Shown here one piece after another: positions 4,544-61,521 of a stretch of DNA of 64,000 nt. The first letter of the stretch is position 1. Each line of letters starts with the position of its first letter. The position numbers were made by a program, and so were the translations under genes. A model generated the notes under the pieces. The model was not told the DNA's origin, did no database searches, and saw only the letters and a program-made list of their open reading frames with translations. The stretch is from Adineta vaga (lineage: Eukaryota > Animalia > Rotifera). The stretch spans positions 18,228,001-18,292,000 of the forward strand of contig CP075492.1 in NCBI GenBank assembly GCA_021613535.1, given 5' to 3'.

Positions 4544-5654
4544 ATGAAAAAAAGAACTTTACAATTTGAAGATCTTAATAATGAACTTATTTATGAAATA
4601 TTTGATTATCTTGATTATTTTCATATTTATAAAAGTGTTTTTAGTTTCAATTCTCGATTTCGATCAAATTTTCCATTGCCAATTAATATTAAGTTTATAT
4701 CTCAATCAAAATTTAAACATTTTAATCAAGATATAATTATTCCAAATACACAACGAATTCATATTCTTTGAATATCAAATTATTTTTTGTTTCATCATAG
4801 TTTACTGATGTTAGCACATAAAACATCTCTACGAACACTTATTCTTGAAAATATTCAATCAAAACATTTGACGAATGTTATTCATCAATTACAATTATTA
4901 TCAAATCTTTCTTCATTGACTATTGCAACTCTCGATTTGGATGGATAAAACATATTTCAGTTGTCTTCATTAAGATATTTCAAATTATATCATTAGGAAT
5001 GTCGAGTTTTAGAAATTTATCATCTAAGACAACAAATGAATTTAGTTCAATTGAACATTTAATTCTTGACAATGGAATAGATTTGAATGATTTGTGCAAT
5101 TTATTATCATATATTCCTAATCTTCGTTATTTTTCAACATGTTTATTTGGGGAACATGATTCTGCACCGATAAAATTACCTTATTTAATCTTAAATCGTT
5201 TGACACATGTTTCTTTCACACGAAATTGTGGTATAACATTCGATGATTTGGAACCAATTTTCATCAATTACTTCGGTTCCATTCAAGTTTTAGATCTTAC
5301 AGTAGATAGTAAATGTATGAATGCAAATAGATGGAAACAATCAATATCTTCATATTTACCAAAGTTACGTGTTTTTGATATTCTTTTCGAATCTATTTTG
5401 GACTAAATGACAATGGTTCTCTGACTATTTATTTGAACAGAAATATGATAATAATATTATGATTTCCTCTTTCGAAAATCCATATAGGTAAGTAATGGTA
5501 GGATTTATAATATAATTATATGAATATATTCGAATTTTTAGAGAAAAAGATTATAAATTATGCAAACAATAGAATGAATTAATTGTTAGAAATGAAAATA
5601 GAAGAGTTTTGAAATTAGTTGATTATGTTCGTACTGAAGATGAAAAAGCATTAA
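4544..5654 (+). pseudogene. F-box/LRR protein pseudogene
   Basis: F-box start FEDLNNELIYEIFDYL, LRR-like repeats, stop at 4769 and frameshifts, intron ~5488-5540; coding-like sequence ends at a telomere-like cassette. Confidence 0.75.
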
Positions 5655-5707
5655 GTGAATGTATGGGTTTGGGTGTCTCTTCGTCCATATCAATCCTCAC
5701 CCGCAAG
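5651..5707. repeat. Telomere-like inverted cassette (degenerate)
   Basis: tgggtttgggtgt - spacer - cctcacccgcaag. Confidence 0.5.
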
Positions 5708-6011
5708 GATATTACGTAAGAGTGATATAATGTAACAGCGGTGTGTCTATCGACCCAATGACCGCTGCACAAGAAAAGAAAAGAAAGAAAATCTTTTATG
5801 AGTAGTAGTCGTATATGTAGTTTTTTTCTTTCTCTAAATAGAAAAAGAACATACTGGTAGTGTCGTTTGTTCTTTTCTTTCCTCTCGTCACGTTGACTTA
5901 CACGAGCGAGAACAGATGGTGTGAAAGAAAAGAAAAATAGTGCTTTTTCTTTCTCATTCATTCATTCATTCGTTCACTTCATATCCACATACATACAAAC
6001 AAACTTACAAA

Positions 6012-6254
6012 ATGTCTCAGACACTCGGAGAAGACCCAGTAATTGGCGTGGAAAGTGGTACAAAGGCGGAACAATTAGCCTGTTTGGGCGGATCAACATC
6101 GGGTGCAACTCCAGAATCTTTTCGTTCAACGGGCGATTCAACAGCCGGTCTCGATGAAGCTGACATACACGGTCGACCAGGGCAAACAACACATGAAGCT
6201 CAATCGGGTACAGTCACATCGGGCAATTCAGAAACAAGCGACAAGTCGAAATAA
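6012..6254 (+). CDS. 80-aa hydrophilic Gly/Ser/Thr/Glu-rich protein (hydrophilin-like)
   Basis: ATG in CAAAATG context, GC-richer than flanks, MSQTLGEDPVIG...SETSDKSK, disordered composition. Confidence 0.6.
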   Translation: MSQTLGEDPVIGVESGTKAEQLACLGGSTSGATPESFRSTGDSTAGLDEADIHGRPGQTTHEAQSGTVTSGNSETSDKSK

Positions 6255-6727: not shown

Positions 6728-6773
6728 GAGGATGGGTGTGGGTATATCTTCTTCACTCACAACTACACCCACA
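6728..6773. repeat. Telomere-like inverted cassette
   Basis: gaggatgggtgtggg-tatatcttcttc-actcacaactacacccaca. Confidence 0.75.
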
Positions 6774-7807
6774 GATTAAATTCGAGTTGCATTTCTTTCT
6801 GTACGAAGTGACTATATATGATAAAAAAGTTTCAATTAATTTCAAGCAAAAATTTATATAACATCATACTTTGAAAAATCTCTCTACAATAGGAATAGGA
6901 ATAGCTTGTCGATGACGAAATATTCATGGTCCCAGCTGTGTGACTAACTTTCCTACATACAGTTGAGCTATACTATTCAAATATCTAGAAGTTACTTTTG
7001 CACCGATCGATATCTTTTCTCCAATAGTTCATCAGCAATAATATGTGGATTTTTCACTAAATCAAATAATGTATGCACCTTTGTTCTCTTCTTCTACCAA
7101 TAGCTTCATTAATGGTTGATAATGATAATTATAAATCTTTTTTATGAAGTTGATTAAGAATTTATTAAATAAATCAAAAAAGAATACAAAGTCTCACATA
7201 TGATAAGTAAAATTAAAGTTCAAACTTCTTTATTTTAGAAAGGTTCTTAACTTTTCTAATTATTGGATATTAATAATCGATATTTTCATGTGACCGAATA
7301 TCTCGATTAGACTGATTTATATTTGTATAATCTGAATTGTTTTCACTAGTTCCTGTAATAGCATTTTTGATTCTATTAAAAGTATATTGGATGCTGTCGC
7401 GTATCGACTATATAGGAATAGAAAATTTATGAATGATAAAAATTTATTCTTATCAAACTTATTCTTACGCAACCCATAACTACAGTCAGAATTATGAAGA
7501 ACATATAAGCACCATTACTAGGTTCAGCCATCTTTGTTTCTAGTTAATATTTTTGCAATTGAAAGAAGAAAAAAAATATTGTTTTTTTCATTTTTTTTCT
7601 CTATTGATTCATACAATATTTTTCATTCGTATTCAATAATTTAATTCTAAACAGTGAAAAAAAGAAAACGTTGAACGAGAAAAATTTTGTATGAAGCGCA
7701 TTATAGACGATTGATTGGCAAAGAAATTGACACTATACCGACTATCCACATCGATCTAATCAAATTCAAGCTATAGAGAAAAAATCTGTTAATGCTGTAT
7801 TTAAAAC

Positions 7808-7847
7808 TGTGGTTGTATTTTATATTCACCCACACTCACACCCATCC
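7808..7847. repeat. Telomere-like inverted cassette
   Basis: tgtggttgt - spacer - cacccacactcacacccatcc. Confidence 0.65.
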
Positions 7848-8852
7848 GTTTCAGCAAAAATAGTCACTAAGTTTGGTTTGATTAATCTTTCAGACGAGGG
7901 TCGAGCAAGTCACCCTCGGCGAGCGTTACTTGTTGTTAAGGATCCGGAGTTGTCCGGGACGACTGTCTTTTATTTTTCTCTGAGAAAAAGAAAAATCTAT
8001 TGTACAAAAGAAATATATAAAAAATGACTAGGTAAAGAAAAAGAGAGAAGAGAGACGAAGGATCGTCCATCTGATATAGATGGCGATCCTGACACTATTC
8101 AAGTCAAAAAAATATCTGTTCGCTTGTACTTCTGTGGTCATGTTCATTGGTATGAACGTCTTTATCCAGTCGACCATAATGGATTGTTTGTGATAAACAA
8201 TTACACTAATCAAACGCCGACCTAAGTCATATTACGACTGGAGCTGGTGGAGCTCCAGAAGGAGCTAATATTGCTAATATGGGAGGCGTTATCAAGGTTT
8301 CGCCCAAAACTATAAGCAAGTACGGTTATGCACGCCTTGAAATAAAAGATTCTTCCGATGAGCCTTATTCACAATTCGTTTATTGTCTACGAACATGCAT
8401 AGAGAAACCACGTCATATATCTGATATATCAGTACAGGTGATTTTTTCTATCGTGTGTTCTTTTCACTTTTTTAGTCGTTTTGCTAGTTCGGACTAGCAA
8501 AGATATTGAAAAAGAGAAAAGGACACATGAGAAACAAAGACCACCCTGTATCAGCATATCAAATATCTTACGTGATGGCTTTTATGCCAAATCATCATAA
8601 ACAAGCGGATCGTTAGTAAGGTCCATAGTAAAATCGTTTTTTCCGAGTCGTGTGCAACTGTATCTATTTATAATCTTGTCCGAAGCATAAGTGATGTCCG
8701 TCATATCAACAGCATTAGCGTCTTCTGTAGCTCCATCACTTCCAGTTTGTACATGAACTAGATCGATATGGTTAGTGTCATTCTTCATCCAGGACTGTTC
8801 ATTACGACGGACTGGATAAGATGTTCGTACTATGAACATGATCACAGAAGTA

Positions 8853-9056
8853 CACTGGGAAAAAAAGGTTCGGCATAGATGTAAAAGTCTCCATATACCT
8901 CCAAATTCTAAAAAAACGACTTTTCAGATCTATGAAACCTTTGACGTTTCTAGGATAAAAAAGTTAGAGGTTTCATAGATCTGAAGAATCGTTCCTATAA
9001 GCATTTGGAGGTATATGGAGACTTTTTCATCTATGTCGAACCGTTTTTTAAGGGTG
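8853..9056. mobile_element. Palindromic MITE (CAC...GTG type, TA on left flank)
   Basis: aaaaaaggttcggcatagat...tcagatctatgaaacct pairs with aggtttcatagatctga...atctatgtcgaaccgtttttt; right end runs directly into GGGTGT repeats. Confidence 0.8.
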
Positions 9057-9116
9057 TGGGTGTACAGGCACGTGTGAGAGATTATCTGCATCTCATACTG
9101 ACACTCACACCTTTAA
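9048..9116. repeat. Telomere-like inverted cassette
   Basis: ttaagggtgtgggtgt ... acactcacacctttaa. Confidence 0.85.
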
Positions 9117-9117
9117 G

Positions 9118-9450
9118 ATGCCCAATTTTTGCGGGAACACCAGATTGACCTTGGCGTCATTTTGATTTACAAGTCGCATGCAATCGAGGCCCTTCTCTAT
9201 AATGATACCTTCGACTGGATCTTCAATAATATGATCTAGCCTTTGTCTTTGTCCCGCGGAACATGTTCAATTGATTGTTATTCTTGTTGTATTGGATTTG
9301 TTTCGTAAAGTTAATAATGGTGTCTCCATCAATTTTCACTTCTGGCTGCTTTTTGTTATATCGATCTTCCAAAATTTTGTTTTCGACATCATCATACTTT
9401 TACCAATCATTCTCTCGTCTCGATGCAGCGTTGTGTGATTTCCAATATCA
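9118..9450 (-). pseudogene. WWE-domain (probably WWE-ART) pseudogene fragment
   Basis: Minus frame Q*YWKSHNAASRRENDW*KYDDVENKILEDRYNKKQPEVKIDGDTIINFTKQIQYNKN resembles a WWE domain; in-frame stops; cut off at the 9048-9116 cassette. Confidence 0.55.
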
Positions 9451-9910
9451 TTGAGAGTTGTGAGGATGCTGAAGAATCGGAGTGATAATTGACACAGAAA
9501 CTGTTTGAAAAGCTCTGTCTCTTTCAAGTTCCACAAAGGAGAAAAAGATATGCCGATAGCCAATATTGTTTTCAATACTACGTTAAGTGAAACTTGCTTT
9601 ATTACTTTTTAGTTATTTATACATTTTTTTTATTAGAGAGAAAGAAAAAAAACGTCGTCAATAAAAATGCGCAGGTACTCTTGTTAGATGAAAACTTTTT
9701 CTCTCAAGCACTTTCGTATGCCGACTTGATTTTATTTTCATCTACGATACGATTAATCAAAGATAAGAACAAAAAAATGAAAAATGTAATACGTTGTGAG
9801 AGAAAATGATAAGAAACCGTTGTTTTGAAAAAAGAAAAAAACTATATGAGACTATACCAAAACATCGTCAGTAGTATCAAACTTGAAAGTTGAATTCAAT
9901 TATTCAAGTT

Positions 9911-9993
9911 TTGAGAGTGTGGGTGGATGTGGGTGAGGTGAGGATGTTAGTGGGTGTGATCATTCTACCTTTAACCAACACCCACACCCATCC
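9911..9993. repeat. Telomere-like inverted cassette
   Basis: ttgagagtgtgggtggatgtgggtgagg ... acacccacacccatcc. Confidence 0.85.
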
Positions 9994-10438
9994 AGAAAGT
10001 TTCAAACGATTTGGTGAATGTTGTGTTTTTTGTCACAAGTACCATGGAAATAGCCAGAAGAATACCAGAGAAATGTCTTTTGTATAGTATAACGCGTTTT
10101 ATATCAAAAACTAATCCAATATAGTAGAACAACAAGGATTGGTACTTTCAGAATAAATTATTCTTTTAAAAATTAGTATCTGTGTAACATATTAAGATGA
10201 TATTCAACAATAAGTTTTTTTCTCTTTTTTGCAAGAAACGAAGGTATTCTTTGTGAAAGGTTCTATTGGCAAAATATTTTCTCTTTTCTTTTTTTCATTG
10301 AAACATTAAATCAAACTTGTGAATTCGATCATTCTTGAAATCATTATAGCATAAAGATTTTCTTCACTTCGCAACACATTATTATTCATCAACAGACAAT
10401 CCGTAACGTTCATTCAATTGATTTCCTTTTTCATCTTC

Positions 10439-11481: not shown

Positions 11482-11948
11482 AATATATTTTTCTCTTTCG
11501 ATAATAAATCTACTATACAAATATCCATTTTGATCTAGATGGAAATAATAATCTTACTTACCCAAAATATCTCTACTTCTTTTCAATAATTTCTTGTTTG
11601 TCTATCTCAAGTAAATTTCATCGTTTTTTGAAACGTCTTTTTTCTTATTTTTCGAAGCTAAATAAGAAAATTCTTATGATATTTTCTGCTTTTTATCGTC
11701 TATTCATCTATTCAAAATAGCATAATTAATTTAATTTGTCGTTTCAAAACAAAATGCAGTACCCGATAAAAAGCCTTGAACTCTACTATATCATTTTGAC
11801 ACTTGATTAACTCTTTCAATACGAATTCTATTTTATGATGTTTACTAAGTAGTTGAGAAAACAAATTAATATATAAGTATTTTATTTGATTATGTTGTTG
11901 GTCGAATAACATTCTTTTTACGAAAAAATATTTCGTTGATAGATAATA

Positions 11949-12033
11949 GGGTGTGGGTGTGGGTGTGGGTGGGGTGTCGATGAGTGTGAGTCAGGCTATA
12001 TATTCTTAACCGTCACACACCCACACCCTTCAA
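11949..12033. repeat. Telomere-like inverted cassette
   Basis: (gggtgt)3gggtggggtgt ... cacacccacacccttcaa. Confidence 0.9.
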
Positions 12034-12093
12034 TTGATAATGAGATTAGTCCATGTTTAATTAACATTCTCGTTGATTTGAAGAGTATGATTA

Positions 12094-13428: not shown

Positions 13429-13470
13429 TTGAGGGTATGGGTGTGTCTTATGGTCAGAAGAATACCCACA
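13429..13470. repeat. Telomere-like inverted cassette
   Basis: ttgagggtatgggtgtg ... tacccaca. Confidence 0.7.
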
Positions 13471-14022
13471 TCACTATCACCAATGTTTTCATAGTAACTG
13501 TTTAGATCCAAAGAAAGATTAACATGATCTTAGTATTACTAAGAAGAACCAGAGAGAGAGAGAGATCTAGTTGAATTTCACCCAATTCATCTTTCTATTG
13601 GTTAACATTATCAAAGTCATTACAAATATCTTAGATAGTATAAGGTGTAGAAATATATGTAAAAACGCAATTCTGTTAAATGGTAGGCTTCAATTAAATA
13701 TATTCAAAGTATCAACAATATGAAACGTCTAACTTTCTGTCCTATATGGAAAAATTGAGCGCACTAGTACAGTCAATTTCCCAAATAACGACGCAAAATG
13801 AGTACATCATTTTGTTTTTGCTTGCGTTCATCTATTTTAAGATCGATCTCTAATAATTTTATATTTGGAAAATCTTTCGATGACGCTCTTTCTAATGATG
13901 AATATTTTGTTGAGTTTCGTCCATGTTTTGATAGAGATATCACCGGTCTACGGCAAGGAAATCTTAACATCGCTATTTAGTATCACTTCCGTAATAACGA
14001 CGGCCAGCTAATTTTCTTCCCT

Positions 14023-14082
14023 AATCTTGAGGGTGTGGATATTCGATAGATGTAATACTAACACACCCACACCATCAAGATT
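14023..14082. repeat. Telomere-like inverted cassette
   Basis: aatcttgagggtgtgg ... ccacaccatcaagatt (15/16 inverted match). Confidence 0.9.
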
Positions 14083-14575
14083 TTTGACCGTTTCAGTGAG
14101 AGAAATGCATTTGAACGCTTTTGCTTCGATTCAGAAAGAAGTTAAATTGATAATACAGACACATTTAGTCTGTGTTTCGTAGTTATACGGGAGGCATTAA
14201 TGAAGGTAATCATGGATCGATGTGATTTTCATACATACATTTTTTTTCTTTTCTACCATCATACAAGCACACCCACACTTTTTCTCTAGATGCAGCCAAA
14301 AGAAAGTGAACGATGCAGAAAAAATGACGGATATTTGCAACGCAACATATATACATACAGAGAAAGAACAATACAAAAGACACAATACTTTTCTCCTTCA
14401 CAATACTTGCGTGAGTGAAAGATGCAACAATCAATAGAATATAATACGAAATATTCGCATCTCATCCGATGATTTTAACGAAAAAAAACACGATCATTCA
14501 ACATTTAAAGTTATTCAAAACTACCAATGTAACTGTGCAAGTGAAACATATATGGTATCTCACATCTAATTGACT

Positions 14576-14620
14576 AGGGTGTGGGTCACATTACTCATTT
14601 TCAATTACACCCACACCCTC
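14576..14620. repeat. Telomere-like inverted cassette
   Basis: agggtgtgggt ... acacccacaccctc. Confidence 0.88.
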
Positions 14621-14937
14621 TATCTTTAATTAAAAGATTATTGTGTAAAATCAGTTCCTGACTAGTTTTTATTTTATCTTATTTCTTATGTGTCTGTATG
14701 AAGTATGAAATGTACTATATTCGACTCTATCATGCGTGAGTGTCATATTTAAAATTTTTTCTCTGTGTCATACGATAATGTATATAGATAGTATATTTTT
14801 TTTTCATCTTTTCTCTTTCACCGTTATTAGTGTATTTTCTTTAGATAGACGCTCCAAAGTACGTCTCATTTGAGTGAATACACGTGCAAATGAACTAGAG
14901 TGAAAGTAAAAACGGAAATAACGCAGTGATATTGAAA

Positions 14938-15909: not shown

Positions 15910-15980
15910 ATGAATTCTCAATCATAATTTATTTGATGAAGAAACGATTAAAACTCTTTCCTGTTTTTTTTTTCTAGAAT

Positions 15981-23212: not shown

Positions 23213-23273
23213 TTGAGGGTGTGGGTGAGGGTGTGGGTGAAGAGAAGAGTCTTTCTTACACCCACACCCTCAA
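23213..23273. repeat. Telomere-like inverted cassette (cleanest copy)
   Basis: Perfect 15-bp inverted repeat ttgagggtgtgggtg / cacccacaccctcaa around gaagagaagagtctttctt. Confidence 0.95.
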
Positions 23274-23426
23274 GACTATAAACTTTTTTCGATCATGAGG
23301 TACTTCAAAAATGGAAAAAAGGTTTATTATACGTTGAAAATTCATAAACCTTTCTTTTCTTTAGCGATACATCCTATCTATTATTGTGAATTCTGTCTCG
23401 CGAACATGTGAAAGAAAAATTAGGAC

Positions 23427-28046: not shown

Positions 28047-28172
28047 CGGATGGGTGAGAATGTGAGTGTGGGTGTGTGGTTGTAGGTGTTAGTATTACAT
28101 CTATCTAACACCCACACCCATCCTCACTCTCACCCAGAACCAGAACTACACCCTCACCCACACCGACACCCT
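28047..28172. repeat. Telomere-like inverted cassette (long arms), ~110 bp upstream of HAL start
   Basis: Degenerate G arm, spacer tgttagtattacatctatc, C arm cacccacacccatcctcactctcaccc... Confidence 0.9.
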
Positions 28173-28465: not shown

Positions 28466-30447
28466 TTGTATGCAATGTTTTGATAAAGACTGGGAAAAAA
28501 TGCAAAACGCATAGTTGGTAATTTTTATTTTTATCTTTTATTGCGCCGTTTTTAGAAAGTGATCGAGTTTCTCGATTATTTTAGGGTGTGGCGGAGGTGG
28601 GATTAAATTGCTGTCATATCGGCCAAATTAATTCGCGGATAGTCGATGTTATTCCTGCCGACTTGCTGCGAAAATGCTTGGCAAAAAGGATGGGGACATT
28701 TTATAGGAACTTTGACCCAATTAGAAAGTAAAGGTAGTTTGATGTGAAACTATCAGCAACTGTAGAGCCCACAGTTAGAAGTTATCTCTATAGGTTCCAG
28801 CTCGATCGGTCAAACCTTTCCCTTGGTTCGATACTCATCCAAATAGTCTTTCTTATGACTATTAAGGGTAAAACAATTGTTTATTTTCAAAAGAGTTTTT
28901 ACATGGTTCGGTAGTCAGTTTATATAACATTCCATAGAGAATTTAATTCTGAATAACACTATATAAATGCCTTTAAATCAAAAGTCAAAAATTGATTACA
29001 AAATGTTTGTGATACCATCATCCTGAAATCATACATAGGCACAGCCAGAATATTATGTATCTTCGTTCTCATCTATTTGCTCCAAATCCAGAGCTATTTT
29101 TTTGAGCATGACTGGGAAACATAAGGAACTACAAAGACAAGCCGTTGCGAAAAATCTACTACCTTACTATTATATAGGACGTTGTAAATTGACCCGAAAC
29201 TTTTCAGCGATGACTAGTCCTAATGAGATACATCTCTGTTAAAAATTTTAGCTCGAGAGACCGTACTAAATCAGAGTTATGACTGATTTACGACCGTTTT
29301 TTGGGATCGAAATAACTTCCTCTAGAAACATGCTAGCGAGCTCTGGCTGGTATCAATTTGAAGCAAGTGTCTGTGCGCAACTTTTCATCGGGCAGAATTT
29401 TGAAAGTCTATCCCATTTCTTTTTTATGAGTTTTTCGTAGCATAGACTGCGAATCTGAGTGGAAAGACGATAATAAATGGCACTTTTCTTAGCCCAAGAA
29501 TTGACTTTAAAAAAACGGGTCGATGACAAATTTATACACATTGAGACCTTCAGAACAAAAAGAAATTTGAATATTGGCTTAATCGGGAGGAAGTTATTTC
29601 AATTTTTCTAATTAAAAACCATGTTTTGAGAAAACTGTTGAAGAAATTTCAGAAACTGTTTTTTTAACCCAAACCCATGAAAATACTCCATTCAGTGCTG
29701 CCATAAGTGGCTGCTGAGTCTTTGTTAAACTCAAAAATTACAGCAATTTTTCGTAAAAAAATGAGGTTAAAGAGATCAAATTTTTTACTGATAAGTCTAT
29801 GAAAATCTGATCTTATTGCGAAATGCTACCTATATTCGAGAAAAGGAAGCTTCGCCGCATCTTCCTATGTAAAAAAACTCAGTTTTAATCTTTTTCGGAA
29901 AAAGTGAGTTTATAGAAACACGATGGCAGTCAAGAGAAATTGATTGATTCCGAGCTTCAATCACTATCAGAAAGTAAATCGATGATGTCGACATTGCTTT
30001 GATTATTGATGAAAGTTCGAACTCGATAGCAGACTGTAATGCACAAATGATTCGAAAAATATCTTGCTTTTCTCCTTTTTACAATGAACAATAGTAAAAA
30101 TCAATCTGATTCGGTGCTATTGAAACATTCTAAGGCTAATATAGTGAAAATTTGCCTTTTTTGAACTGGATTAATGCGTTTTTCGCATATATGGAACATT
30201 TCTCACGGTTTAGCCAAGAATCATTTAAATACTCTTTTCCTCGGTAACTCGTCTGCTTGAATTGGTAGGGACATTTCTTTTATTAGAGCGATTCATCGTT
30301 CGCATTGTTTCATAAACTCTGGATTAAATAGGTAAAATAAGAAAAAAGAAAAGCCGATGATTAATAATGAGATCAAGTGTTCTTTAGTCAACAGACAGCA
30401 TAAAACTATATATAGAATTGTATTTCGTCGAGTAGTGAAAATAACCA

Positions 30448-34868: not shown

Positions 34869-35036
34869 CACTCACCCACACCCACACTCACCCACACCCA
34901 CACTCACCCCACACCCAAATACAGACTTTTCTGACTATGAACACTAGTACGAGGATAAATCTAGGTGTGGGCGAGGATGGGTGTGAATGTTAGGATGAGA
35001 GTTTTCCCGTCGTCTCTAAACTGCACACTTATACAC
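34869..35036. repeat. C-rich telomere-like tract followed by a second cassette
   Basis: (cactcacccacaccca)n at 34869-34916; ggtgtgggcgaggatgggtgtg ... cacacttatacac at 34964-35036. Confidence 0.8.
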
Positions 35037-35671: not shown

Positions 35672-35718
35672 GAGGGTGGGTGTGGGTGTCTGCTCTTCTT
35701 TCATACCCACACCCACAC
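35672..35718. repeat. Telomere-like inverted cassette
   Basis: gagggtgggtgtgggtgt-ctgctcttctttcat-acccacacccacac. Confidence 0.9.
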
Positions 35719-35873
35719 GTAATGAACGTTTCTCTCTTCAAAATTAAATGTAAAAAATAACAGGCACACATTATTAGTTACCAGCACTCATCGTTGTAAC
35801 TATGAATAAAAATAAAAAGAACGGTATAAGGGATAGTTAGTTAAACTGATTCCAAATTGTATGGTGGTAAATC

Positions 35874-36830: not shown

Positions 36831-36908
36831 TTGAGGGTGTGGGTGTGGGTGTGGGTGGTTAAGAATAAGATATAAAACTTACACCAGCACCCACACCCAC
36901 ACCCTCAA
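36831..36908. repeat. Telomere-like inverted cassette
   Basis: ttga(gggtgt)3gggtg ... cacccacacccacaccctcaa; 21-bp perfect inverted repeat. Confidence 0.95.
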
Positions 36909-37499
36909 GATATAATCAGAATAGATTATGATACAATAATTATTGATGTTTTCCTATATAAACGTGAATGTCTCATTGACTAAAAAGATTTAATGTTACA
37001 CTTTATGCATTTTTTAGTTCATTTCTTGCAAATATTATCAATAAATAAAAATAAAACATCGAAAATTCTATTCATTTCTATCGTTATTTATTTTCTTTTT
37101 CTTCTTACATAATAACGAATGAAAACCATCAATCAAATCGACAAATAACTTTCTTCTTTATATATATAAATAGATAGAAGATGTTGAAACTTTATCATTT
37201 TGCAGTACGGTAGTTATTAAACGAACTTTTTCACTCAGTATGAGAGAAAAGGTAATATTTATCTACTTAAACGAGTTCTTTATCGGATTTCTCGTCAGCC
37301 AACTGAGAATAAGATTTTTTTCTAATCTTTCTTCCCATCAAGAGAATTAACTTTTTCGTAGAATATATTCCGTCGTGTATGGTTATCACTCACTCATTTG
37401 TATTTACTAACGTCGTAAAAAGAAACTAGGTATATAAAGAGTACACACAGTGTTGTAAAAAACACTTCTTTTCTTTACTTATACTAAAGTGAATATATC

Positions 37500-41386: not shown

Positions 41387-41455
41387 ATCTTGAGGGAGGG
41401 TGGATGAAGGTATGAGTATTATCTTCATGCCAGACATTCTCATATGCACACCGAC
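41387..41455. repeat. Telomere-like inverted cassette (degenerate)
   Basis: atcttgagggagggtggatgaaggtatgag ... ctcatatgcacaccgac. Confidence 0.6.
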
Positions 41456-42007
41456 AATCCAATACTGGTGTCAATTTTTGATCAAGTGAAACAGCGGGAG
41501 GTAGTTGGATGGAATTGTGAAACTGAAGGCAACATCGACACCGTCAGCTATACCTACCATGATTCTCCTATATACTTAAAATTGCCCGAGTACATTTTAC
41601 CTTTGAATTATTCATTTTGAAACAATAACAAATCACTTGAATTTCATGCATAAACACAAAGAAATTTCGATGAATATATTGAGGTTACTGTTCTAGGTAT
41701 TTCATTCAATCACATAATAAAAACAGATCTTATTCATCGCATTTACGTCACATCATTTTTGTTACAATTATTCACTCGTTGAGAAATGCACGAAAATATT
41801 TACTTTCAGAATGTATTACTCATTTCAACAACCTACTTTAGCCGATTTATTGTAGCTTCCCCAGATTGTTTTTATAAAAACGTTTCACTATATAAAAGGT
41901 GTAGAAATTTCAGAAAATATCAGGTGCTTTCTGTGAACATTGACAAGTGTTATTCAACTACTGTACTGCATCGATAAATCACGACGATTTTAGCAGATTA
42001 ATTCAAA

Positions 42008-42759: not shown

Positions 42760-42816
42760 TAGAGGGTGTGGGTGAGGGTGAGGACTAGTTATAATCATCT
42801 ACACGTACACCCTCAA
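42760..42816. repeat. Telomere-like inverted cassette
   Basis: tagagggtgtgggtgagggtgagg ... acacgtacaccctcaa. Confidence 0.88.
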
Positions 42817-44213
42817 GTGGCGTTCTTTCTGGTGAGTTTATCTCCGATGATCGTAGTGAGAAAAGATTGGAAAGCTATAATCTTACAATGCAACATTCCA
42901 ATGACTGTGGAACAATTTATTAGATTCTTCACAAACCATTGAATTGGTTTCTTTGCATGATGAATTCCGAAGGATGTAACGTTCTGAGAATGAAATAGAA
43001 TATAAAGAACACGCTAGAAGGCAGAATGTATCATTTAAAGGTGTATTGATTTACGATTGGTGAACTATAGTTGCCGTTAGTTGTTCGACTCAATGTGTGA
43101 AGAATTGTTCTCACAAATTCAATGCTTAGATTTTTTTTAAAGTTAAAACAAACATTACTTTTCTTTTTGCTTCTGTTGTGAGCACACGTTGTTCGAAAGA
43201 GAAAGCAACAATACCAAAACACTGATCATGTAAATCTATAAGCATTTTCAATACGGTTTGTCTTTTTCATCTATAAATGAAGTTTTCTTTCAAGGTCTAC
43301 TCATCCTGAATATAATATTTCTTATGTATCGAATCCAATGCATGAGAATGTGAACATGTCATCCAACACGGTGAATCAAATAAATGATGATTTAAATGCA
43401 GTAAGATTTTACCTTTGTAATAAATATTATAAAATGATGATTTGTTTTAATGTTAGGTCAAAATACAAATGACTAGAAATATCGAAGGGATCCTTGAACG
43501 TGGAGAAAACATAGCGACTATAGTACAAAGATCAGGTTAAAGTATTTCGTTATGGTCATTCAATAAAAATGATTTCTCTATTTAGATCAAATCAGCAACA
43601 ATGCACAAATTTTCAGTCGAACTGCACGCGATATTAAGACAAAAATGTGGTGGCAAAATTTGAAAGTAATGATACATATCGGATTCTATATTAATCACTT
43701 GTTTGAAATCGTGTAGATGTGGATTTTTATAGTAGTTATTATTTGTTTAGTTACTATCGGTATTGTTCGTAAGTTTTGTTTCTTTCATTTAAATTTATAA
43801 TCTTTGAACTTTTATAATTATAGTGATTGCGGTACTTCTCAAGAAAAACGACAATTAACTATGTTTCTTCTACATATTACAAACATTGTTTTCTCGATCA
43901 CATAAGTACAATTAAGATAAATAAAATTCGTCATTCTACCTACTCTGATATCATTTGAGAAAGGTTATCTTTAAACGTGATTATATTATGTTTCATAATT
44001 TACTTCATCAAATTGATTTCTTCGATATGGAATAGGTTACAAGAAAGGTGTTAGGATGAGAGTTAAAGGTACAGTCGGGTGTGAGCGAGTTTCAATGAAT
44101 AGATTCAATGCATCGTACGATGCGTTTCGACAGTTGCTTAGACTGCCAATCATCAGGCATGTTCTTAAACAATAGGGTACATAATCATTCAAATGTCACC
44201 TAAATTCGGAAGA

Positions 44214-44417
44214 TGGGTGTGGGTGTGATATTAGCTACCACAACTAGTTTCACCTCGGCTAAGAAGATCTGCGGATGACTAAAATTTCGTTTGATCCGAA
44301 AATCAACAAAATTATCAGTTAAATTTTTGTTGAATGCGTGAAAATTGCTAAGGACAGATTCTTAAGGGTAGGTGTGGGTGTGGGTGCGAAAGAAGAAGGG
44401 ATACACCCACACTGTCA
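44214..44417. repeat. Two telomere-like cassettes (44214-44256 and 44361-44417)
   Basis: tgggtgtgggtgtg...cacctc; cttaagggtaggtgtgggtgtgggtg-cgaaagaagaagggat-acacccacac. Confidence 0.8.
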
Positions 44418-47249: not shown

Positions 47250-47318
47250 TGAGGGTGTGGTTGAGGTCTATGTGTGAATATGCTAGTCACATTCTTGCCC
47301 ATTCACTCACACCACACA
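47250..47318. repeat. Telomere-like inverted cassette
   Basis: tgagggtgtggttgagg ... cactcacaccacac. Confidence 0.75.
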
Positions 47319-48707
47319 ATATGGATCAGTGCCGAGAGTTGACTGTGAAATGATAAACGAAGCTAGTCGGTAAACTGATCATTTGAAATCACATGCTATA
47401 TCAGCAAAATTTCAATGAAAGAAACAGGTAAAACGAAACCAGCAAAAAAATCTGGAATTTTTTTGAAAAATGGTCCCATATATGAGATACACACGTAGAG
47501 AAAAGTCTTTCTCCCCTCTTTATTTCTGCACTATTATACTTTGTTTAAAATTTATAGCCGAATAAAGATTTGACTTGAGAGTTTTATTGTATTGTGATCC
47601 GTATAACTATACTGAAATAAAACCCTTCAGTCATATCTCTACTCGGTAATAAATTTTATATATAGAATGCCAGCAAAGAAATGAAGAGAGAGAAGACTTT
47701 TGTCCGAGACTGTAGTTTCGAAGAGCACGTATAAGATACCCAACATAAGCCATCTTTTGTAAGTGAATCCCACAACAGATAATTAAATAACCTGTCTTTG
47801 TCACTTTTTTCACGAACTCCACCTTTTGAAAAATTTCAGTTGTAAAATACCCATCTCTATAAACCGGTTAATTTTTTTACACCCGATTCGGTTTCAGTAC
47901 TGATCGAGGGCGATAAATGATGATTTTAAGTAACTAATTATCCGTTCAGTTTCAGTCATGCAGAAGTTTGATGAAATGATAGCAGGAATAGAATGAAAAA
48001 TGATCCTAATGAGTGTCGAGTTCAAAATTAAAATGAAAAACTCCCTGAAATAGTACAGAATTTTTAAAACAAGTTTACTCATAAGAAAAATACAATCGTG
48101 TACACAGTATAAAAAAGACGTAGGAAACGGTTTACACTGTTCTGTTTCGATTCTTTGTCGATTTCTTAAAATTCATTTGTAACACATCTGTTTTGTTGAT
48201 ATTTTTTAATGTACAAATTCGAAAAGAGCAGTAAAATGAACTACATATAATTATTTTTCTGTTTTTTTTTTGTTGTTTCACTCAGTATAACACAGGCGTT
48301 TTTACTACTCGTTTGTTGAAAGTTAAAAATATACACATTTGAGCGTCAAAAGCTTTGGGTTTTCAAAAAAGTACGCGATATTGTCGTATTTTCCTTCTAC
48401 TTTCAAGAAAAATTTTGCTGATTTTTCTCCTGATTTTTAAAGAAAATCTCCTGATCAACTCCTAACTGTTAACGAAAAAACCCGGATTTCTAAAATTTGG
48501 ATTTTGTGGGAGAAAAGTCGAATTTGTGTTTATGATTATTTTCAGAGGATTCGGAAATTTTAATCAGGTAAATTTTTTACTGGGTGCTTCAAGTGTTATT
48601 TCAATTCAATTCTGTGAGTTAACAAGTTTCAAAAGAAACATTTTGATTAGAGCACTCAATGTATTCTTTTTAGAATATATACACGCACAGTACACAATAC
48701 ACGAGGC

Positions 48708-49805: not shown

Positions 49806-49900
49806 AGGGTGTGGGTGTGAGTGTGTATGTTTAGATCTCGAGGGTGAAAAGAAGAGTATTACCTACATCCTCTTTTTGCCAACATCCACACCCACCCTAG
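49806..49900. repeat. Telomere-like inverted cassette (possibly compound)
   Basis: agggtgtgggtgtgagtgt...atctcgagggtg-aaaagaagagtattac...-catccacacccaccct. Confidence 0.85.
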
Positions 49901-51855
49901 ATTACTCATTTTATATCTTTGAGGAGAAATATCTCTTTATTACACGTTAAAAGATTCCGTAGAATCAAATAATACAAAACTGTATAGCTTTGAGTGTCTC
50001 AAATGGTTTTATAAAAAAAAAAGCTTTCGATATATGCCGAGTTCAAGAGTTGATTAACATCATTTTTGAGAATTTTTTCATTAGATACCATATGACGTTA
50101 GTAACGATCTGTGAAGCTAGAACGAAAGAAGCACATACAATAGAAGTGACGAAATACTAGTTAATCAAAGTAGAAAAGACATTTGGTACAAATATATGAA
50201 ACTTGTTCTATTTTCAACTTCTTTATGCCTTTTATATGTTTACAATTTAGATTGACGTATAAGAACTTCGTTGGACAATACCTGTTTTGTATAAATAGGA
50301 CTGACAAATTCAGCCTTCGAAGAATTTTTTCTATGTCGTTCTCATGTATGTGTACTTCTTTCTAATTATTCTACTGCTTAATACCGCATATATTATTACC
50401 CCGTACGCAACTTAATCGTTTTTTGCTTTGCTTTCGGCATTATTTATTCATTTACTGTTGTACTGTCATAACTAATATTCTTCAATACTATATAATAATA
50501 AAGAACCAAAATAAAAAAGAATGTGAATGTTGTAACGATAATGAATTATCTATTGCTCTTCTCTGTCTTTCCCCCTTCGTAAGGGTGTGGAGTGTGAGGG
50601 TGGGATGTGGATCAAAATTAAATATTCATATTGTTAAGGTCCGTATAAGTTGATAATTAATAGTTTATTTGTAAATGTAAACAAGACAACTTCACATAAA
50701 ATCGAGAGCTGTTTATATAGTATGCTAACACACACCTAGTTGGAATATACTAAGTAGATCTTATATGATCTTGTAAAATTCCTAAGATGTTATTACAAAG
50801 AAAGAAACCTAGATGAAGTTCTTTGGAAAATCCCTATTAGGATCGAGAATGAGTGATATCTATAGTAATCATATGTATATGAGAAAAGAAAGAGAACGAA
50901 CATATGGAAAAGACCTATACTATGAGTCATCTTATGGTACGTTGTATTACGTGCCATAACACATATCCACATCTTTATTCACACTCTCAAGATAGAAAAT
51001 ATATGTTCACTTAAGTAATGGTAAAACATATAATAATAATAACATTATACCAATAGAAGACACTGCAGTTTAAGTCGTCGACATCGTTAGCATGTAACAA
51101 AATGGAATAAAATTGACCTGAATCTAGATGACAAATATCTGTAAACAATGAAATCTATTACTTTCTTTTTTTTCATTTAAAATAGAATATCTTATTTATT
51201 TATTATTTATTAAATGCATTTACTCACTTCGAGATAGACCGTCACTTAACAGTAATAAAATTACTCAAAACAATCCAGAATACTGGATTTTTTTGCCAGA
51301 TCATTCGTTTCGTCAAAGATAATAAAAGTATACCGATAAAAAAAATGAGAAAAAAACGAAAGAATGAAGTTTGTTTTTAGTGATAATTCAAACTGGTAAA
51401 TGTAAAAAAAGAGTATCTTCATTTTAAGTTTGTTAACAAATAATAAATAATGAAATATCAACAGTTCATGAACGTATACCATATTAGAATTAATATGATT
51501 TTTCATATTGTCTACATTATGATTAGAAATAACAGCAAAGTTAGGGAATATATGAATGTACTCTTCAACCATACCCGCTGTCTTTCCGATTTTATTGATT
51601 CAATACAATACAAACGTCTGTGATTTAAAATCATATGATCGTGCTAACTAGATTCTTACACTGCCGAGACATTTGTTATTTAACATGGGAAAGATTTATT
51701 AAGAAAAATAATCCTAAAAAATAGATCAATTAAATAACGTTCGTTGATCGGGAAGTAAACATCTGCCATAGTTTTGTTCCAGCTGGAATTTTTTGAAGTG
51801 TGCATGATTACCATGTCATCATACACTTGCTTTTACAATTTGAAAGCCTTTGAGA

Positions 51856-56770: not shown

Positions 56771-57216
56771 TGCTGAAATTGAAGAAACTATAAAAGCCGT
56801 TGAGAAAGTTGGACGATTCGCTCAAACAGATAGTGAGTATATTTTGCTAATAATATTACAAAAACATAAAAATATGGATTGTTTTGTAGCCTACAATCAA
56901 TATTCAACTAAAGAATCGTTTGATCACAATAGCCTAACACAAACGACGCCCTTCGTGTCTTCAACACCTAGTCTCATCAAACTTAATACAAAATGGCAAG
57001 AACAACTGAAAACTGAGAGAGAACGAGTTAGACGAAATTTAATTACCGGCAATGACCATAAAGTAGATGATGCATCAGATGATGAGAGCATAGATGATAC
57101 AGTTGTAACTCTCATAAATTCAAACAAAAAACATGATACAAGCATATCTATTAATTATAATTCTATATTACCAGTTGCCTCAATAATTAACATCACCTGT
57201 TGCACTCAAAAAGGCA
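56770..57216 (+). mobile_element. Helitron-like Rep/helicase fragment (region just upstream of the PIF1 domain)
   Basis: EETIKAVEKVGRF-intron(~56833-56889)-...KWQEQLKTERERVRRNLITG...ILPVAS..TQK resembles, from memory, rotifer Helitron ORFs; ends at GGGTGAGGGTGTGGG. Confidence 0.45.
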
Positions 57217-57970
57217 TGGGTGAGGGTGTGGGTCTCCGAACAATATAAGACGCTCACATGTATGCCGTTGCTATGGCTGATGATGAATATCAAATTATAA
57301 TCATATTGAAACGCTTAATTTTGATTATTCTATTCTTCTGTTTTATAGTTCAATGTTTGAGAGCCTGAGTATTCATACGAAACCTCTTCGCCCCTTTCGT
57401 CAATAGAACATGTTTAATGCAAGCAATGAGTGTTAGTAGATAAAATAAAATATGCATTGTTAGAGGTAAAGCATGTGAATACAACTTGGATGGACCAGAT
57501 GCTTATATTTATAAATCTTATCTCGATCATATAAATCACCTTGGAATAACATGCTATGCTAATAATTTTTTGTTCTGTACGCCATTTCTTTATTTTATTT
57601 TCATTAGAACAGCACAGTAAAAAGTACCCATACCTTATATCCATTGAATTGAATAGTAGTAGTGATATAGTATCAGCAATATAAAAAGAATTTTTTTCTC
57701 GATAAAATTCAAATATGGAGATTCCCATAATCAGTCAGCACTTTGTGAGTAATGTCATGGTTTCTATATAATCAATAGTAAACAAGCCATCGCTTCTAAG
57801 ACGAGATTTTCTTATTTTTCATTTCAAATCTCTAGACAGAGGTGCTTTTATTTCAAGAGAACTTCTATACATTCCATTATCCAGCCTGTATTGAAATGAG
57901 ATACATTTTCTCTTCTTTAGACATATGTTTTGCTTGCGACAGAAGAATTGAGAAGTATCTGTGAAAATAA

Positions 57971-60134
57971 TATGATGGCAACTAGTATGTGCCAATTTGT
58001 ATTACTATTATTGATGATACTGGCAATTCATGATGGTTTCGTTAGTTCATCGCACAACAACCGACCGGTGTCCACTCAATTATATGTTGTTCCATTTTCA
58101 AGTTTTCTGGGCAATGACGCTGATGGCTCACTCACACATCCATACTTATCGATTCAACAAGCACTTGATCATGTTGAACGTAGCTGTCACCATGACAACA
58201 CTGCAATGCGTAGGACAAAAATCAACTTGTATCCAACTTACCACTTCGCTGGTACTCTCAGATTTAATCAAGCACATAGTCACATACGATTAACAACGAT
58301 GAATGTTGAAGATACTGTCTTTTACGAAGAGTTGGCCGCCAGGGAACACACTTATCAACGATTACCAGCTGCAAGTATAAGTGGTGGAATACCAATAACC
58401 GGTTGGACATTAGCGGGCAACAACACATACAAAGCTGTCGTAGCCCAACCAGTATTTGTCAATCAGCTATTCGTTGAAAATCGCCGCATTGTTCGTACCC
58501 GTATTCCAGTAAATCAATCTGAATATCTTCAATATGCAGCACCATTGCAAGATCCAAATCAGGCACGATATGGTTTTCAATATGCTATCGGACAATTCGA
58601 CTCGTGGTCTTTGGATGATGCCATGGTAGTTGTCTATCATAGTTGGACCACATCGCATCATTACATCGATCAAACTATACCGTCGAATAGAACCGTTTTA
58701 TTTACCAATCCATCTGATCTTCCTATTGGAACATACCCCATTCAGGGACAACGACGATTTCATGTTGAAAATCTTTGTATATCATTAGTACCAAACTCAT
58801 TTTGTTTTGAGAATGCAACAAAAACCGTTTATCTGATGACTGATGGATCCTATGATCCAATGAAAGTACAAGTTATCACTCCAGTGAATGAATTTATTGT
58901 ATTAGTTGCTGGAACTGATGTCACCAAGCCAGTCGAGGATATTGTTATCGATAATGTTGCAATACAACATAGTGCATGGAATATTGGTCGAACCCAACAA
59001 GCTGACTATCAAGCAGCCTCATTTCTTACTTCTGCTCCACTTTATATTGCCAATGCAACATCAATCATCATTTCAGACGTTGAAGTCAGTCATACTGGAT
59101 CATATGGAGTTTGGATTAGAGAAGGAACAACCGATATCAATATTATTAATTCGTTAATCACTGACACTGGTGCTGGAGGTATTCGCATTGGACAAATGAC
59201 AGCACCAATCTTAACACCGACTGCTTCAATACGTATAATATCGAATGAAGTCAGTTACGGTGGAAATGTATTTCCAAGTGGAGTTGGAGTGATAAGTCAT
59301 CGTGCAGTTGATGTTGTCATTGCTGATAATAGTATCCACCATCAACGATACACAGGAATATCGATAGGGTGGCAATGGGGATATGATACATCATATACAA
59401 GCAATGTATTAGTTCAAGGCAATTATATCTACAATACTGGACAACATATTCTTTGTGATCAAGGTGGCATTTATACGTTAGGTATTCAGCCAGGAACGGT
59501 TATTAGTAATAATGTGATTAAAAACGTTTTTAGTTATGCTGCCTATATGTGGGGCATTTATCTGGATGAAGGCTCGTCGAAAATTCTGGTCTCAAATAAT
59601 ATTGTATATAATATTGGCTGGGGTGGTTTGTTTCAACATTATGGTGCTAATAATACCATCATTAATAATGTATTTGCGCGTGCATCAGTAATTCAACCAC
59701 CACAACCTGGTGACCCCATTCCAGACGGTGATCTTCGTATAATGAATACAGAAAATCATCTTTCATGGACATTTACACGTAATATTGTCTACGATACATT
59801 TCAAGGGAATAACCATTCTGCATTCAAATCCGACGCTGCAGACGTCTCTGTATCATTTAGTAATAATGTTTATTATAATCCATATGACACTCCGTTATTA
59901 TTCGGAATACAACAAACATCATTTGCAGAGTGGCAAAAAACTGGACAAGACAACGGCAGTGTAATAGCAGATCCATTATTTGTTGGTGACATCAATCAAT
60001 GCGATTTTTTTACAGTTCAATCCAATAGTCCTGCAGCTAAACTTGGATTTGCAAATATAACTAAACTTTCAAAGTGGACTCCTGGTTGTAGTACGGATGA
60101 TGTGAGTGACAACAATCAATGTTATCGCTGGTAA
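57971..60134 (+). CDS. Secreted right-handed beta-helix protein, GH141-like glycoside hydrolase, bacterial type
   Basis: Signal peptide, G.D.ADGS...PY.SIQQA, ISGG, QLFVEN, YTGISIGWQWGY, DQGGIYTLG, GIYLDEGSS, SVIADPLF; 2.1 kb without introns. Confidence 0.82.
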
Positions 60135-60172
60135 CAGAAATGCTGTTTAGTTTTCCATTCTCATTAAGAGAC

Positions 60173-61443
60173 TGTACACTCTAAAAAAAATAGGAGTTTT
60201 ACCGAACCTGTATCCAGGGGAAGATCCTTTGAGGTTTCGTATCGACTTCCCCAACTAAAAAAAGATCGATGAAGACTCAACCGAATGTTTTTTGCTTCAG
60301 TAAATCGCTACGAAACCTCAAAGGATCTTCCCCTGGATACAGGTTCGGTAAAACTCCTATTTTTTTTAGAGTGTAGAGAATATATTGCATCATTCTCTAA
60401 CCAAAAGGTTATTAAGAACATTTCACTAAATGTTCCTGTTTTTTTCTCTCTCTCGTTCTTCTCATATACATATATATATATATGTATGTTCTATCCTGTT
60501 GTTCTTCTTCTTCTTCTTGCTCGTCTTGTTTGTCTTCTAACTTCTCCTACATCATCATCATCATCCTATTCTGATCCTGTTGTTTCTGTTGTTTCTGTTT
60601 TCTATCGTTCTGTTTACAATAAACAAGAACTCACGTTACACGTTATCCACAACATTTACATTGGCGACGAGGTGATTCTTATTTTTTTTCTCATTCATTT
60701 TACTAATTGGTGTTGATTCAATTATTAAACATTTGATGCCGGAAACACTTGGAACATCAATTCAATCAACAATTCCAGCTTTACATGGATTTGATCCGCG
60801 CACAACAACGTGGGAACGGTACAGAGACCGGGTGTGCTTTTATTTCAAAGCCAACCACATGGAGGAAGACGATGATGATATTAGTTGGAATGAAATTATC
60901 AAGACATTAGATTCACATTATGATGTAAAGAAGAACATTATGACGTCGACCTACGATTTCTATTCTTGCAATCAGAAAGTGGGTCAGTCATTCGCAGAGT
61001 GGAAAGAAGAGCTCTGCGACAAATTACGTCATTGTGGTTTCACATCTTCTACACTTAAAGATAAACCACAGGATCGCGCCTTGGGCGATGCTTACGTCAT
61101 TGGCATTCGCAGTCAAAAAATTAGACAAGCTTTACTCAAGGAACAGGACCCTACTCTTGAAGCAACTGAACGTATTATTCAATTAGCTGAAAGATTAGAA
61201 GCAGATGTTCGACATTTTGGTGAACCTGTTGTTGCTGGTGAAAATGTTGTGTCTAAGGTTTACAAACAACCTTGCAAACGACAAACAACACCATCTACTA
61301 CTACTACTGCTGCTGCACCAAAAGCTGGTCTTAAATCGTGTGAATCATGTGGTTCAACGAAACACATTCGTACAAAATGCAAATATCGTGAATTTATTTG
61401 CAATTATTGCAAAAAACCTGGTCATCTAGAACGTGTCTGTCGA
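60173..61443 (+). mobile_element. Truncated Ty3/Gypsy (Mag-like) LTR retrotransposon: 5' LTR, PBS and gag
   Basis: LTR TGTA...TACA (60173-60660, MITE inserted at its TA), AATAAA at 60618, PBS TGGCGACGAGG at 60662, gag from 60736 with two CCHC knuckles (CESCGSTKHIRTKC, CNYCKKPGHLERVC); no pol or 3' LTR. Confidence 0.85.
60177..60373. mobile_element. Young MITE with ~65-bp perfect TIRs (CACTCTA8...) and TA TSD
   Basis: 60177-60241 is the exact reverse complement of 60309-60373; TA on both sides. Confidence 0.93.
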
Positions 61444-61521
61444 GGGTGTGGGTGTGGATGTCAGTATATCTTCTTCACCGACACCCACACCCTCACCCAC
61501 ACCCACCCACACCCACCCCAC
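61442..61521. repeat. Telomere-like inverted cassette truncating gag
   Basis: gagggtgtgggtgtggatgt-cagtatatcttcttcaccg-acacccacaccctcacccacacccacccacacccacccc. Confidence 0.93.

Follow-up and report, generated by a model that had tools for sequence, protein, structure and literature searches.

The stretch of DNA analysed here (hereafter, the window) covers 64,000 nucleotides of contig C3 of Adineta vaga (G000:C3:18228001-18292000) and contains about 24 short cassettes in which two telomere-like arms face each other across a loop, a G-rich arm of TGTGGG and TGAGGG units being followed by a C-rich arm of the complementary units, together with several lone arms. The genome comprises 100.8 Mb in six contigs, and the window, with a base composition of 68% A+T, lies about 2.06 Mb from the end of the 20.35-Mb contig C3. 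According to the chromosome-level assembly papers, A. vaga has a six-chromosome karyotype with (TGTGGG)n telomeres, and its subtelomeres are rich in transposable elements, foreign genes and rearrangements. A domain scan of 30 long open frames of the window revealed glycosyltransferase 11, HtrL/YibB, kelch and aromatic amino-acid lyase products, as well as a HisRS-like gene, BIR/RING, a beta-helix protein and a short-chain dehydrogenase. None of these 30 frames contained a transposase domain, and the Rfam scan of the window gave zero matches, including none to the hammerhead. Our comparisons within the genome rest on sampled small stretches and those with DNA and RNA on assembled Logan contigs (two DNA runs, X1 and X6); the cassette statistics refer to a non-redundant set of 81 cassettes, drawn from the window and from further loci, with 162 arm ends.

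All 24 cassette starts listed in an earlier note on this DNA carry telomere-like tracts, and its four lone arms are real. By reading, two clear arms are present in about 17 of the 24, and one arm is degenerate in about 7 (5651, 7808, 13429, 34964, 41387, 44214 and 47250). Telomere-like heptamers are enriched about 25-fold in the window (39 G[TA]GGGTG and 38 CACCC[TA]C, versus about 1.3 and 1.7 in shuffled sequences). The G-first polarity that the note had described holds for all pairs spaced 10–70 bp apart in the window (28 G-then-C, 0 C-then-G) and extends to the whole genome, where the strict pattern GGGTGTGGGTG-N10-60-CACCCACACCC gave 612 matches, as compared with 7 for the opposite polarity and 6 and 298 for the mirrored controls. 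This pattern recovers 4 of the approximately 24 window cassettes (9 nested matches); by extrapolation, and not by a count, the genome would contain roughly one to two thousand cassettes. The matches listed for contig 1 concentrate in the outer few megabases. Polarity alone cannot distinguish a scar from an element, because an inverted repeat that starts with a G-rich tract reads G-first on both strands.

The cassettes are 40–160 bp in size, with a median arm length of 15 nt on each side and a median loop length of 23 nt (range 7–48). The lengths of the left and right arms are weakly correlated (r = 0.28), in agreement with the independent variation claimed earlier. The arms are inverted repeats, like the terminal inverted repeats (TIRs) of miniature inverted-repeat transposable elements (MITEs) and other TIR transposons, and as DNA the cassettes fold into hairpins far better than shuffled sequences do (z of -3.9 or lower in 7 of 10 window cassettes). 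The assertion that no cassette interrupts an intact exon is plausible and was checked in part: the lone arm at 33014-33044 is intronic, cassette 9048 lies in an unspliced RNA-like contig, and cassettes 55534 and 61442 are located in the tails of long open frames that may be exons. An origin as introns or introners was rejected, given that the RNA-like contig is unspliced across 9048, the sole cassette covered, and that cassettes lie between genes.

The absence of a consistent target-site duplication (TSD), noticed previously in the window, was maintained in the larger sample: no TSD was found in the 81 cassettes, whether the comparison started at the arm edge or 4 or 7 nt further outward. Direct repeats of 2–10 nt at these offsets were absent in 70–78 of the 81 and never exceeded 4 nt. 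The method is able to detect TSDs, because a 236-bp MITE at 47014-47249 (ends TGTGACAATC...CGTCACA), used as a control, shows a clean 5-bp duplication. This MITE has at least 25 genomic copies at 85–98% identity, with exact 5-bp duplications in 10 of the 12 copies examined and also in the window copy, which sits in the G arm of cassette 47250 and duplicates TGAGG; the length of the TSD may point to a Transib-like family. The repeat had been considered as a fused part of the cassette arm and turned out to be an unrelated insertion.

The cassettes stand at joints of segments that lie apart in the source sequence. For five junctions, a paralogue showing the earlier state was available, and in each of them homology ends exactly at the outer edge of the arm, while the source proceeds without a break into sequence that has no relation to the other flank, rather than into that flank as at an empty site. 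At the first junction, the window from 23507 to at least 31733 is 97–99% identical to C3:19.48–19.49 Mb; identity sets in with the first base past the C arm of cassette 23427, where the paralogue lacks a cassette and is bordered on its left by unrelated DNA. The second and third junctions belong to locus L023, situated 45 kb upstream of the window, which carries a 97% copy of window 13007-13612. The copy is 598 bp long and has a cassette on each side, the left boundary being a cassette followed by CAAGATGTT. The window is continuous across both boundaries and the left breakpoint falls inside a 339-codon open frame; therefore, the window is the source and L023 holds a captured fragment, capped in the order C arm, fragment, G arm. 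At the fourth junction, window 56778-57223 corresponds at 99% identity to a portion of a helicase-like reading frame of contig 1; in the window this segment breaks off, and a 16-nt G tract comes next, with unrelated DNA behind it. At the fifth, the segment starting at 23278, after cassette 23213, has an older copy (82%, L039) that runs on leftwards without a cassette; for a breakpoint at 23192, the locus available for comparison (L049) was too diverged.

In addition, the repeats on either side of cassette 9911 have other copies that, in the contigs, part from the window sequence exactly at the two cassette edges, and the contigs around this cassette show loose ends and raised depth. The lone arm at 33014-33044 heads about 250 extra bp in the intron of the HisRS-like gene, a stretch that its relatives on contigs 4 and 1 do not have. 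No empty-site allele was found in the contigs of the two DNA runs, and the contigs gave no transcript ends. The telomere-type tract is joined to the 3' end of each truncated segment, as in a break healed by telomerase, and the G-then-C polarity is seen on both strands because each arm is attached to the 3' end of a segment. The breakpoints, the 3'-attached tracts and the missing TSDs thus support that part of the earlier proposal by which the cassettes are joints of broken ends with a G-then-C geometry. Replication of hairpin-capped ends into palindromes was rejected as their source: the flank-to-flank score was 13.3, versus 12.3 in the control, and the flanks are not inverted copies of each other.

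Several observations concern the same segments in their own right. The segmental duplication of at least 8.2 kb (23507-31733 / C3:19482001-19490280) includes the aromatic amino-acid lyase gene and two internal cassettes, and the C arm at 28108-28171 differs in length between its two copies. Adjoining the captured fragment of L023 is a 1.09-kb non-autonomous element (L023:304-1397, C3:18181516-18182609) whose inverted ends are GC-rich (..GTCCCGTCTCGTCCCGCC..) and which has several copies at 96% identity. The HisRS-like copy of the window (31315-33564, minus strand) is a third, diverged copy, 67–76% identical to those on contigs 4 and 1, and its extra intron stretch includes a small hairpin. At 14459-14582, a contig of run X6 (2022) has a 29-nt G-rich tract in place of 122 bp, joining an existing cassette; this variant is absent from the contigs of run X1 and may represent an allele or else reflect recent re-healing at a cassette.

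The arms begin with a nested signature, (CC)ATCTTGA|GGG. Upstream of the outermost GGG of the 162 arm ends, A is found in 66%, GA in 45%, TGA in 36%, TTGA in 33%, CTTGA in 18%, TCTTGA in 15% and ATCTTGA in 12%. TCTTGA is preceded by A in 33 of 42 instances; farther outward a weak preference for C or A is seen, and no signal past it. The GA|GGG unit is outermost in 45% of the arms but makes up 9% of the inner units, and the presence of the motif at the left end is independent of its presence at the right end. Since TCTTG(A) does not occur in the source sequence at the second and fifth junctions, it represents added DNA and not a target preference. Such a nested series would be expected if priming took place in variable registers along a single fixed template.

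The same start is found at the ends of the Athena/Terminon retroelements, which were reportedly described in bdelloids by Gladyshev and Arkhipova in 2007 and by Arkhipova and colleagues in 2017. The published 3' end of Terminons consists of a hammerhead followed by (ACACCC)n or (TCACCC)n, which pairs with G overhangs. Our search for a hammerhead core with a C tract within 35 nt gave 55 matches (nested matches included) and 0 in the controls, and we inspected 20 of these loci together with two found via the Rfam hammerhead model. The hammerhead-bearing 3' ends have the structure ...CGAAAC-GCGTC-ATGGCTGCTAGAACA-(CACCCA)n; the tails stop with CCCTCAAGA(T) in at least 5 of the 21 sampled, and others end earlier in the series. 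One antisense Athena copy shows the flank followed by TCTTGAGGG(TGTGGG)2, leading directly into the element. The cassette C arm with TCAAGAT matches these C-rich, telomere-complementary tails. Because the same start motif is present at both, cassette arms and Athena junctions share a template, which would be either the end of the Athena RNA or a telomerase RNA seeding the end before Athena attaches.

The spacers between the arms are not unique sequence but proved to be recurrent. Of 3240 pairs of loops, 181 are related, compared with 11 for shuffled loops, and the loops group into families that are found in either orientation. In family C, all 35 genome occurrences of GAAGATATACCCAC are preceded by a G arm and lie inside cassettes, and none of them is part of a longer element. 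The family-C consensus through the inner arm is GGGTG-TAGATG-TGAGTG-AAGAAG-ATATA-CCCAC; the copies are distributed over all six contigs, and their flanks differ among the 34 fetched, except for L151 and L153, which share theirs. Because the inner arm and the loop are inherited as conserved families, the cassettes are templated copies. The earlier proposal is thus not supported in its original wording: arms and linker did not arise independently and at random, the arms having a defined, added start shared with Athena ends and the loop families being copied. When family-C cassettes are oriented by their loop, a complete terminus is equally frequent on the two sides (n = 34, p = 0.66), and in no cassette of the 34 do both sides carry six motif bases or more; an asymmetry between a priming side and a run-off side, hinted at in 11 cassettes, was gone with 34.

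The loops have no overall likeness to the linkers between hammerhead and tail of the sampled Athena families (8.21, with a null of 8.32), and their origin as 5'-truncated Athena sequence or hammerhead cleavage fragments was rejected on this ground. Single matches, namely of family A to the GTCATGG.CT. linkers and of some loops to a GATGAGAC core, may be real.

We interpret the cassettes, with moderate confidence, as scars of templated end healing through which fragments were joined. From the observed junction positions, the absent TSDs, the added start motif shared with Athena ends and the loop families, we infer the enzyme, the order of steps and the copying from a cassette as follows. Each free DNA 3' end would receive a seed that starts at a variable point within (CC)ATCTTGA and proceeds through a TGAGGG unit to TGTGGG units. 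The seed may be templated by telomerase RNA or by the C-rich 3' tail of an Athena-like RNA and copied by telomerase or by the Athena reverse transcriptase (RT); whichever RNA is involved, it would carry CCCUCAAGAU. Two such G-rich 3' tails would be unable to pair with each other, but a seeded end could pair with a G arm in any of the existing cassettes, from which it would copy the inner arm, loop and C arm. Folding of the nascent strand into a hairpin would favour release just past the C arm, and the new C arm could then anneal to the G seed on the second end, closing the junction. In this manner, arbitrary fragments would be joined and loop families spread, producing a subtelomere of 0.2–9 kb segments, many of them with foreign-looking genes. 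Such a scheme would explain why the G arm comes first, why TSDs are missing, why the nested termini on the two sides are independent of each other, why the sides are alike when oriented by the loop, and why arm lengths correlate only weakly, as well as family loops with unrelated flanks and double-capped fragments; lone arms would be ends joined without the cassette-copy step.

Several points weigh against this interpretation. The informative junctions number five, and no de novo cassette was observed, all six cassettes of 9001-15000 being present in the DNA contigs of both runs. The ATCTTGA start could be assigned to telomerase RNA and to Athena RNA alike, the donor-copy step is deduced solely from the family structure, and the model leaves the ultimate origin of the loop families unaccounted for. 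At least one cassette, that of locus L004, carries complete terminal motifs left and right, as would also be expected if a pre-formed unit had been inserted. Finally, the outermost 1.5 kb of the ends of contigs 1, 2, 3 and 5 (L065-L068) contain no telomere arrays. These ends carry coding-like DNA, though the published assembly is described as reaching telomeric repeats; the identity of the A. vaga telomere repeat was taken from the literature and not from these four ends.

If the cassettes are scars of templated healing, they constitute a sequence-level record of fragment joining, in which fragment boundaries are marked at base resolution. The start signature points to a specific template common to Athena retroelements, and the junctions would be copied and not improvised. 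The cassettes could also serve as a simple genome-wide marker for past repair or capture events, at the one to two thousand sites extrapolated above, and their formation is directly testable in existing irradiated or desiccated lines. Bdelloids, which survive chromosome shattering, have the highest known content of foreign genes among animals, and most of these genes lie in subtelomeres. A bolder form of the interpretation, which we put forward tentatively, is that the cassettes are self-propagating repair templates and that any nuclear fragment, foreign ones included, may be seeded at both ends and stitched into the subtelomere through the copying of a hairpin from a cassette already in place. 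This would provide a mechanism behind modular subtelomere growth and exceptional foreign-gene uptake, and a eukaryotic counterpart, driven by RT or telomerase, of cassette arrays.

Among the alternatives, we regard as rather unlikely a hairpin retrotransposed short interspersed element, in which the whole cassette (CCATCTTGA, G arm, loop, C arm, TCAAGATGG) would be a small non-autonomous RNA, copied by the Athena/Terminon RT onto a free DNA 3' end, with subsequent end joining of the product to a second end. The cassette finishes on both sides with the Athena 3' terminus, its loop and inner arms are passed on over their full length, TSDs are lacking, complete two-terminus units exist (such as L004), and cassette 9048 indicates that cassettes can be transcribed; moreover, endonuclease (EN)-deficient Penelope-like elements are reported to prime on free ends. 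However, a fixed RNA strand predicts distinct priming and run-off sides, whereas terminus completeness is equal on both, and the cassettes have no hammerhead, the fold that immediately precedes the tail at the 3' ends of Athena. In addition, we know of no process that cuts RNA exactly at the base of a hairpin.

An element moving at the DNA level without TSDs, i.e., a pre-formed double-stranded or hairpin DNA unit that is released by excision or amplification and serves as filler ligated into breaks, its two ends being nibbled independently, appears improbable. The independent nested truncation at both ends, the missing TSDs and the family structure would suit it, but no enzyme or source was found, the 30 scanned open frames of the window being free of transposases, and both the identical terminus on Athena tails and the difference between outermost and inner units would be left unexplained. 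Pure telomerase healing and end joining with random filler, the likeness of loops arising from later segmental duplication, would account for the polarity, the breakpoints and the lone arms and agrees with the neotelomeres published at breakpoints; nevertheless, the recurrence of family-C, A and B loops on all chromosomes with unrelated flanks and the excess of related loop pairs over shuffled ones already disfavour it, and we consider it very improbable. A classical MITE was rejected on account of the absent TSDs and the breakpoints, and an ordinary MITE or foldback transposon moved by a transposase, the unrelated flanks of which would stem from later recombination between copies, is scarcely credible, although tandem-unit inverted repeats of variable length as in Foldback elements, high copy number and subfamilies speak for it, since no TSD occurs at any offset tested, a true MITE in the window gives a clean one by the same method, the source is continuous at five junctions, one fragment is double-capped, and no autonomous partner was seen in the 30 window open frames or in a genome search that was not exhaustive. 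The tiny element with telomere-like TIRs offered in the earlier note as an alternative thus survives in its family structure but not in its TSD-making cut-and-paste movement.

Templated end healing has partial analogues among known systems. Chromosome healing and short interstitial telomeric repeats at repaired breaks are known from other taxa, and head-to-head telomere fusions, e.g., human 2q13, have the same G-then-C polarity as the cassettes. Unlike such fusions, the cassettes have arms with a median of 15 nt in place of arrays, contain a conserved loop and are recurrent, not singular. Endonuclease-independent insertion of LINE-1 and twin priming at double-strand breaks use free 3' ends to prime reverse transcription; extreme 5' truncation, absence of TSDs and inverted structures from two primed ends are features in common, but LINE-1 belongs to a different retroelement class, and the cassettes have a template tail that mimics the telomere and form a self-similar hairpin family. 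Ciliate telomere-bearing elements are segments bounded by telomere repeats, and integron attC sites are imperfect palindromes between gene-sized units. The likeness to these two is one of resemblance only: no transposase or integrase is linked to the cassettes, whose telomere polarity belongs to the flanking segments, and no evidence of site-specific recombination was found at them. Foldback elements and MITEs share inverted arms of tandem units, independent arm lengths, hairpin potential and subfamilies, but the cassettes have no TSD, flanks that are non-contiguous in the source and no transposase partner found.

In A. vaga, neotelomeres and Athena fragments have been published at deletion breakpoints (PMC13564844), and there, as in chromosome healing and interstitial telomeric repeats in general, telomere-type repeats are placed on a broken 3' end. 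The cassettes differ in that both ends are seeded and joined head to head, the start is a fixed non-telomeric ATCTTGA, the centre is a copied family sequence, and the sites would number in the thousands. Athena/Terminon EN-deficient Penelope-like elements, as summarised in PMC6431247 and PMC3846280, have the same C-rich (CACCCA/TCACCC)n tail, attach to free DNA or telomere ends, are subtelomeric and have host genes caught between units. Their tail ends in the same nested CCCTCAAGAT terminus. The cassettes are without RT gene, hammerhead and body, consist of two tails placed head to head around a loop, and have loops unlike the sampled Athena linkers. Short telomeric tracts, capping of truncated elements and host genes between Athena copies have been published for bdelloid subtelomeres. 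In the literature searched, which did not reach the primary Athena/Terminon papers, we found no description of paired hairpin cassettes, namely of the systematic head-to-head hairpin organization, the shared ATCTTGA start, the loop families and the double-capped fragments; an earlier mention is possible.

Table 1. Cassettes and lone arms of the window (window positions).
Feature	Position	Strand	Remarks
Degenerate cassette (weak G arm, loop, weak C arm)	5651..5705		Loop resembles that of locus L079
Cassette, family-C loop, TATATCTTCTTCAC orientation	6728..6775		Genome match C3:18234738
Cassette, weak G arm, clear C arm	7808..7850		Telomere-like tracts
Cassette TTAAGGG...CCTTTAAGA within transcribed stretch	9048..9120		Unspliced RNA-like contigs span 9007-9597
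Cassette with multi-copy DNA on both sides	9911..9995		Other flank copies diverge at 9907 and 9995
Cassette, family-A loop GTCAGGCTATA..CTTAA	11949..12030		Tracts, loop comparison
Cassette, clear G arm, weak C arm	13429..13480		Copied with flanks into L023
Cassette, family-B loop, AATCTTGA...TCAAGATT on both ends	14019..14092		About 18 bp past truncated transposon inverted repeat
Cassette	14576..14622		One DNA run has contig with longer G tract replacing 14460-14581
Near-perfect palindromic cassette	23213..23277		Older copy L039 of right-hand segment without cassette
Cassette, family-E loop	23427..23510		Paralogous segment (at least 8.2 kb) starts at C-arm outer end, 23507
Cassette, family-B loop, extra C tract	28047..28165		Present also in 97% paralogue
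Lone G arm	28582..28603	+	Telomere-like tract
Lone arm, minus-strand G-rich, starts TTGAGAG	33014..33044	-	Start of about 250 bp extra intron DNA
Cassette ATCTTGATGG...CCCTCAA	33885..33950		Telomere-like tracts
Long C arm (34869-34923), piece of about 40 bp, G arm (34962-34990)	34869..34990		Very short piece, double-capped
Cassette	35672..35720		About 200 bp downstream of 211-codon minus-strand open frame
Best-preserved cassette, TTGAGGG(TGTGGG)3...CCCTCAAGAT	36831..36912		Hairpin z = -9.7
Degenerate cassette, starts ATCTTGAGGG	41387..41460		Telomere-like tracts
Cassette	42760..42820		Telomere-like tracts
G arm and weak C arm	44214..44260		Telomere-like tracts
Cassette, family-C-like loop	44361..44415		Telomere-like tracts
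Degenerate cassette	47250..47325		G arm interrupted by unrelated 236-bp MITE (47014-47249)
Cassette, long composite G side	49806..49900		Telomere-like tracts
Lone G arm	50581..50612	+	Telomere-like tract
Cassette, long loop	55534..55642		Telomere-like tracts
Lone G arm capping truncated helicase-like fragment (56778-57223)	57217..57233	+	99% paralogue continues as open reading frame
Cassette, family-C loop, long C arm	61442..61521		Telomere-like tracts

Other repeats of the window were separated from the cassettes. A 240-bp multi-copy repeat near cassette 14023 was rejected as a part of it, being the inverted repeat of a DNA transposon: the window has one such inverted terminal repeat at 13768-14005, truncated about 18 bp short of the cassette, and elsewhere the repeat occurs in inverted pairs 50 bp to 3.5 kb apart, e.g., C4:810992/811700. 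The 200-bp near-perfect foldback at 60172-60378 has 91-nt arms with 91% complementarity and no telomere-like arms; it matches about 7 other loci on both strands at 81–95% and represents a separate palindromic family. A repeat of about 1.65 kb (39360-41030), with an internal inverted part at 40255-40465 and at least 25 genomic copies at approximately 76–84%, is probably a transposable element. The glycosyltransferase-11 and HtrL/YibB-like open frames (14899-17015) are 72 bp apart, of bacterial type and with no cassette between them, and possibly form one captured block.

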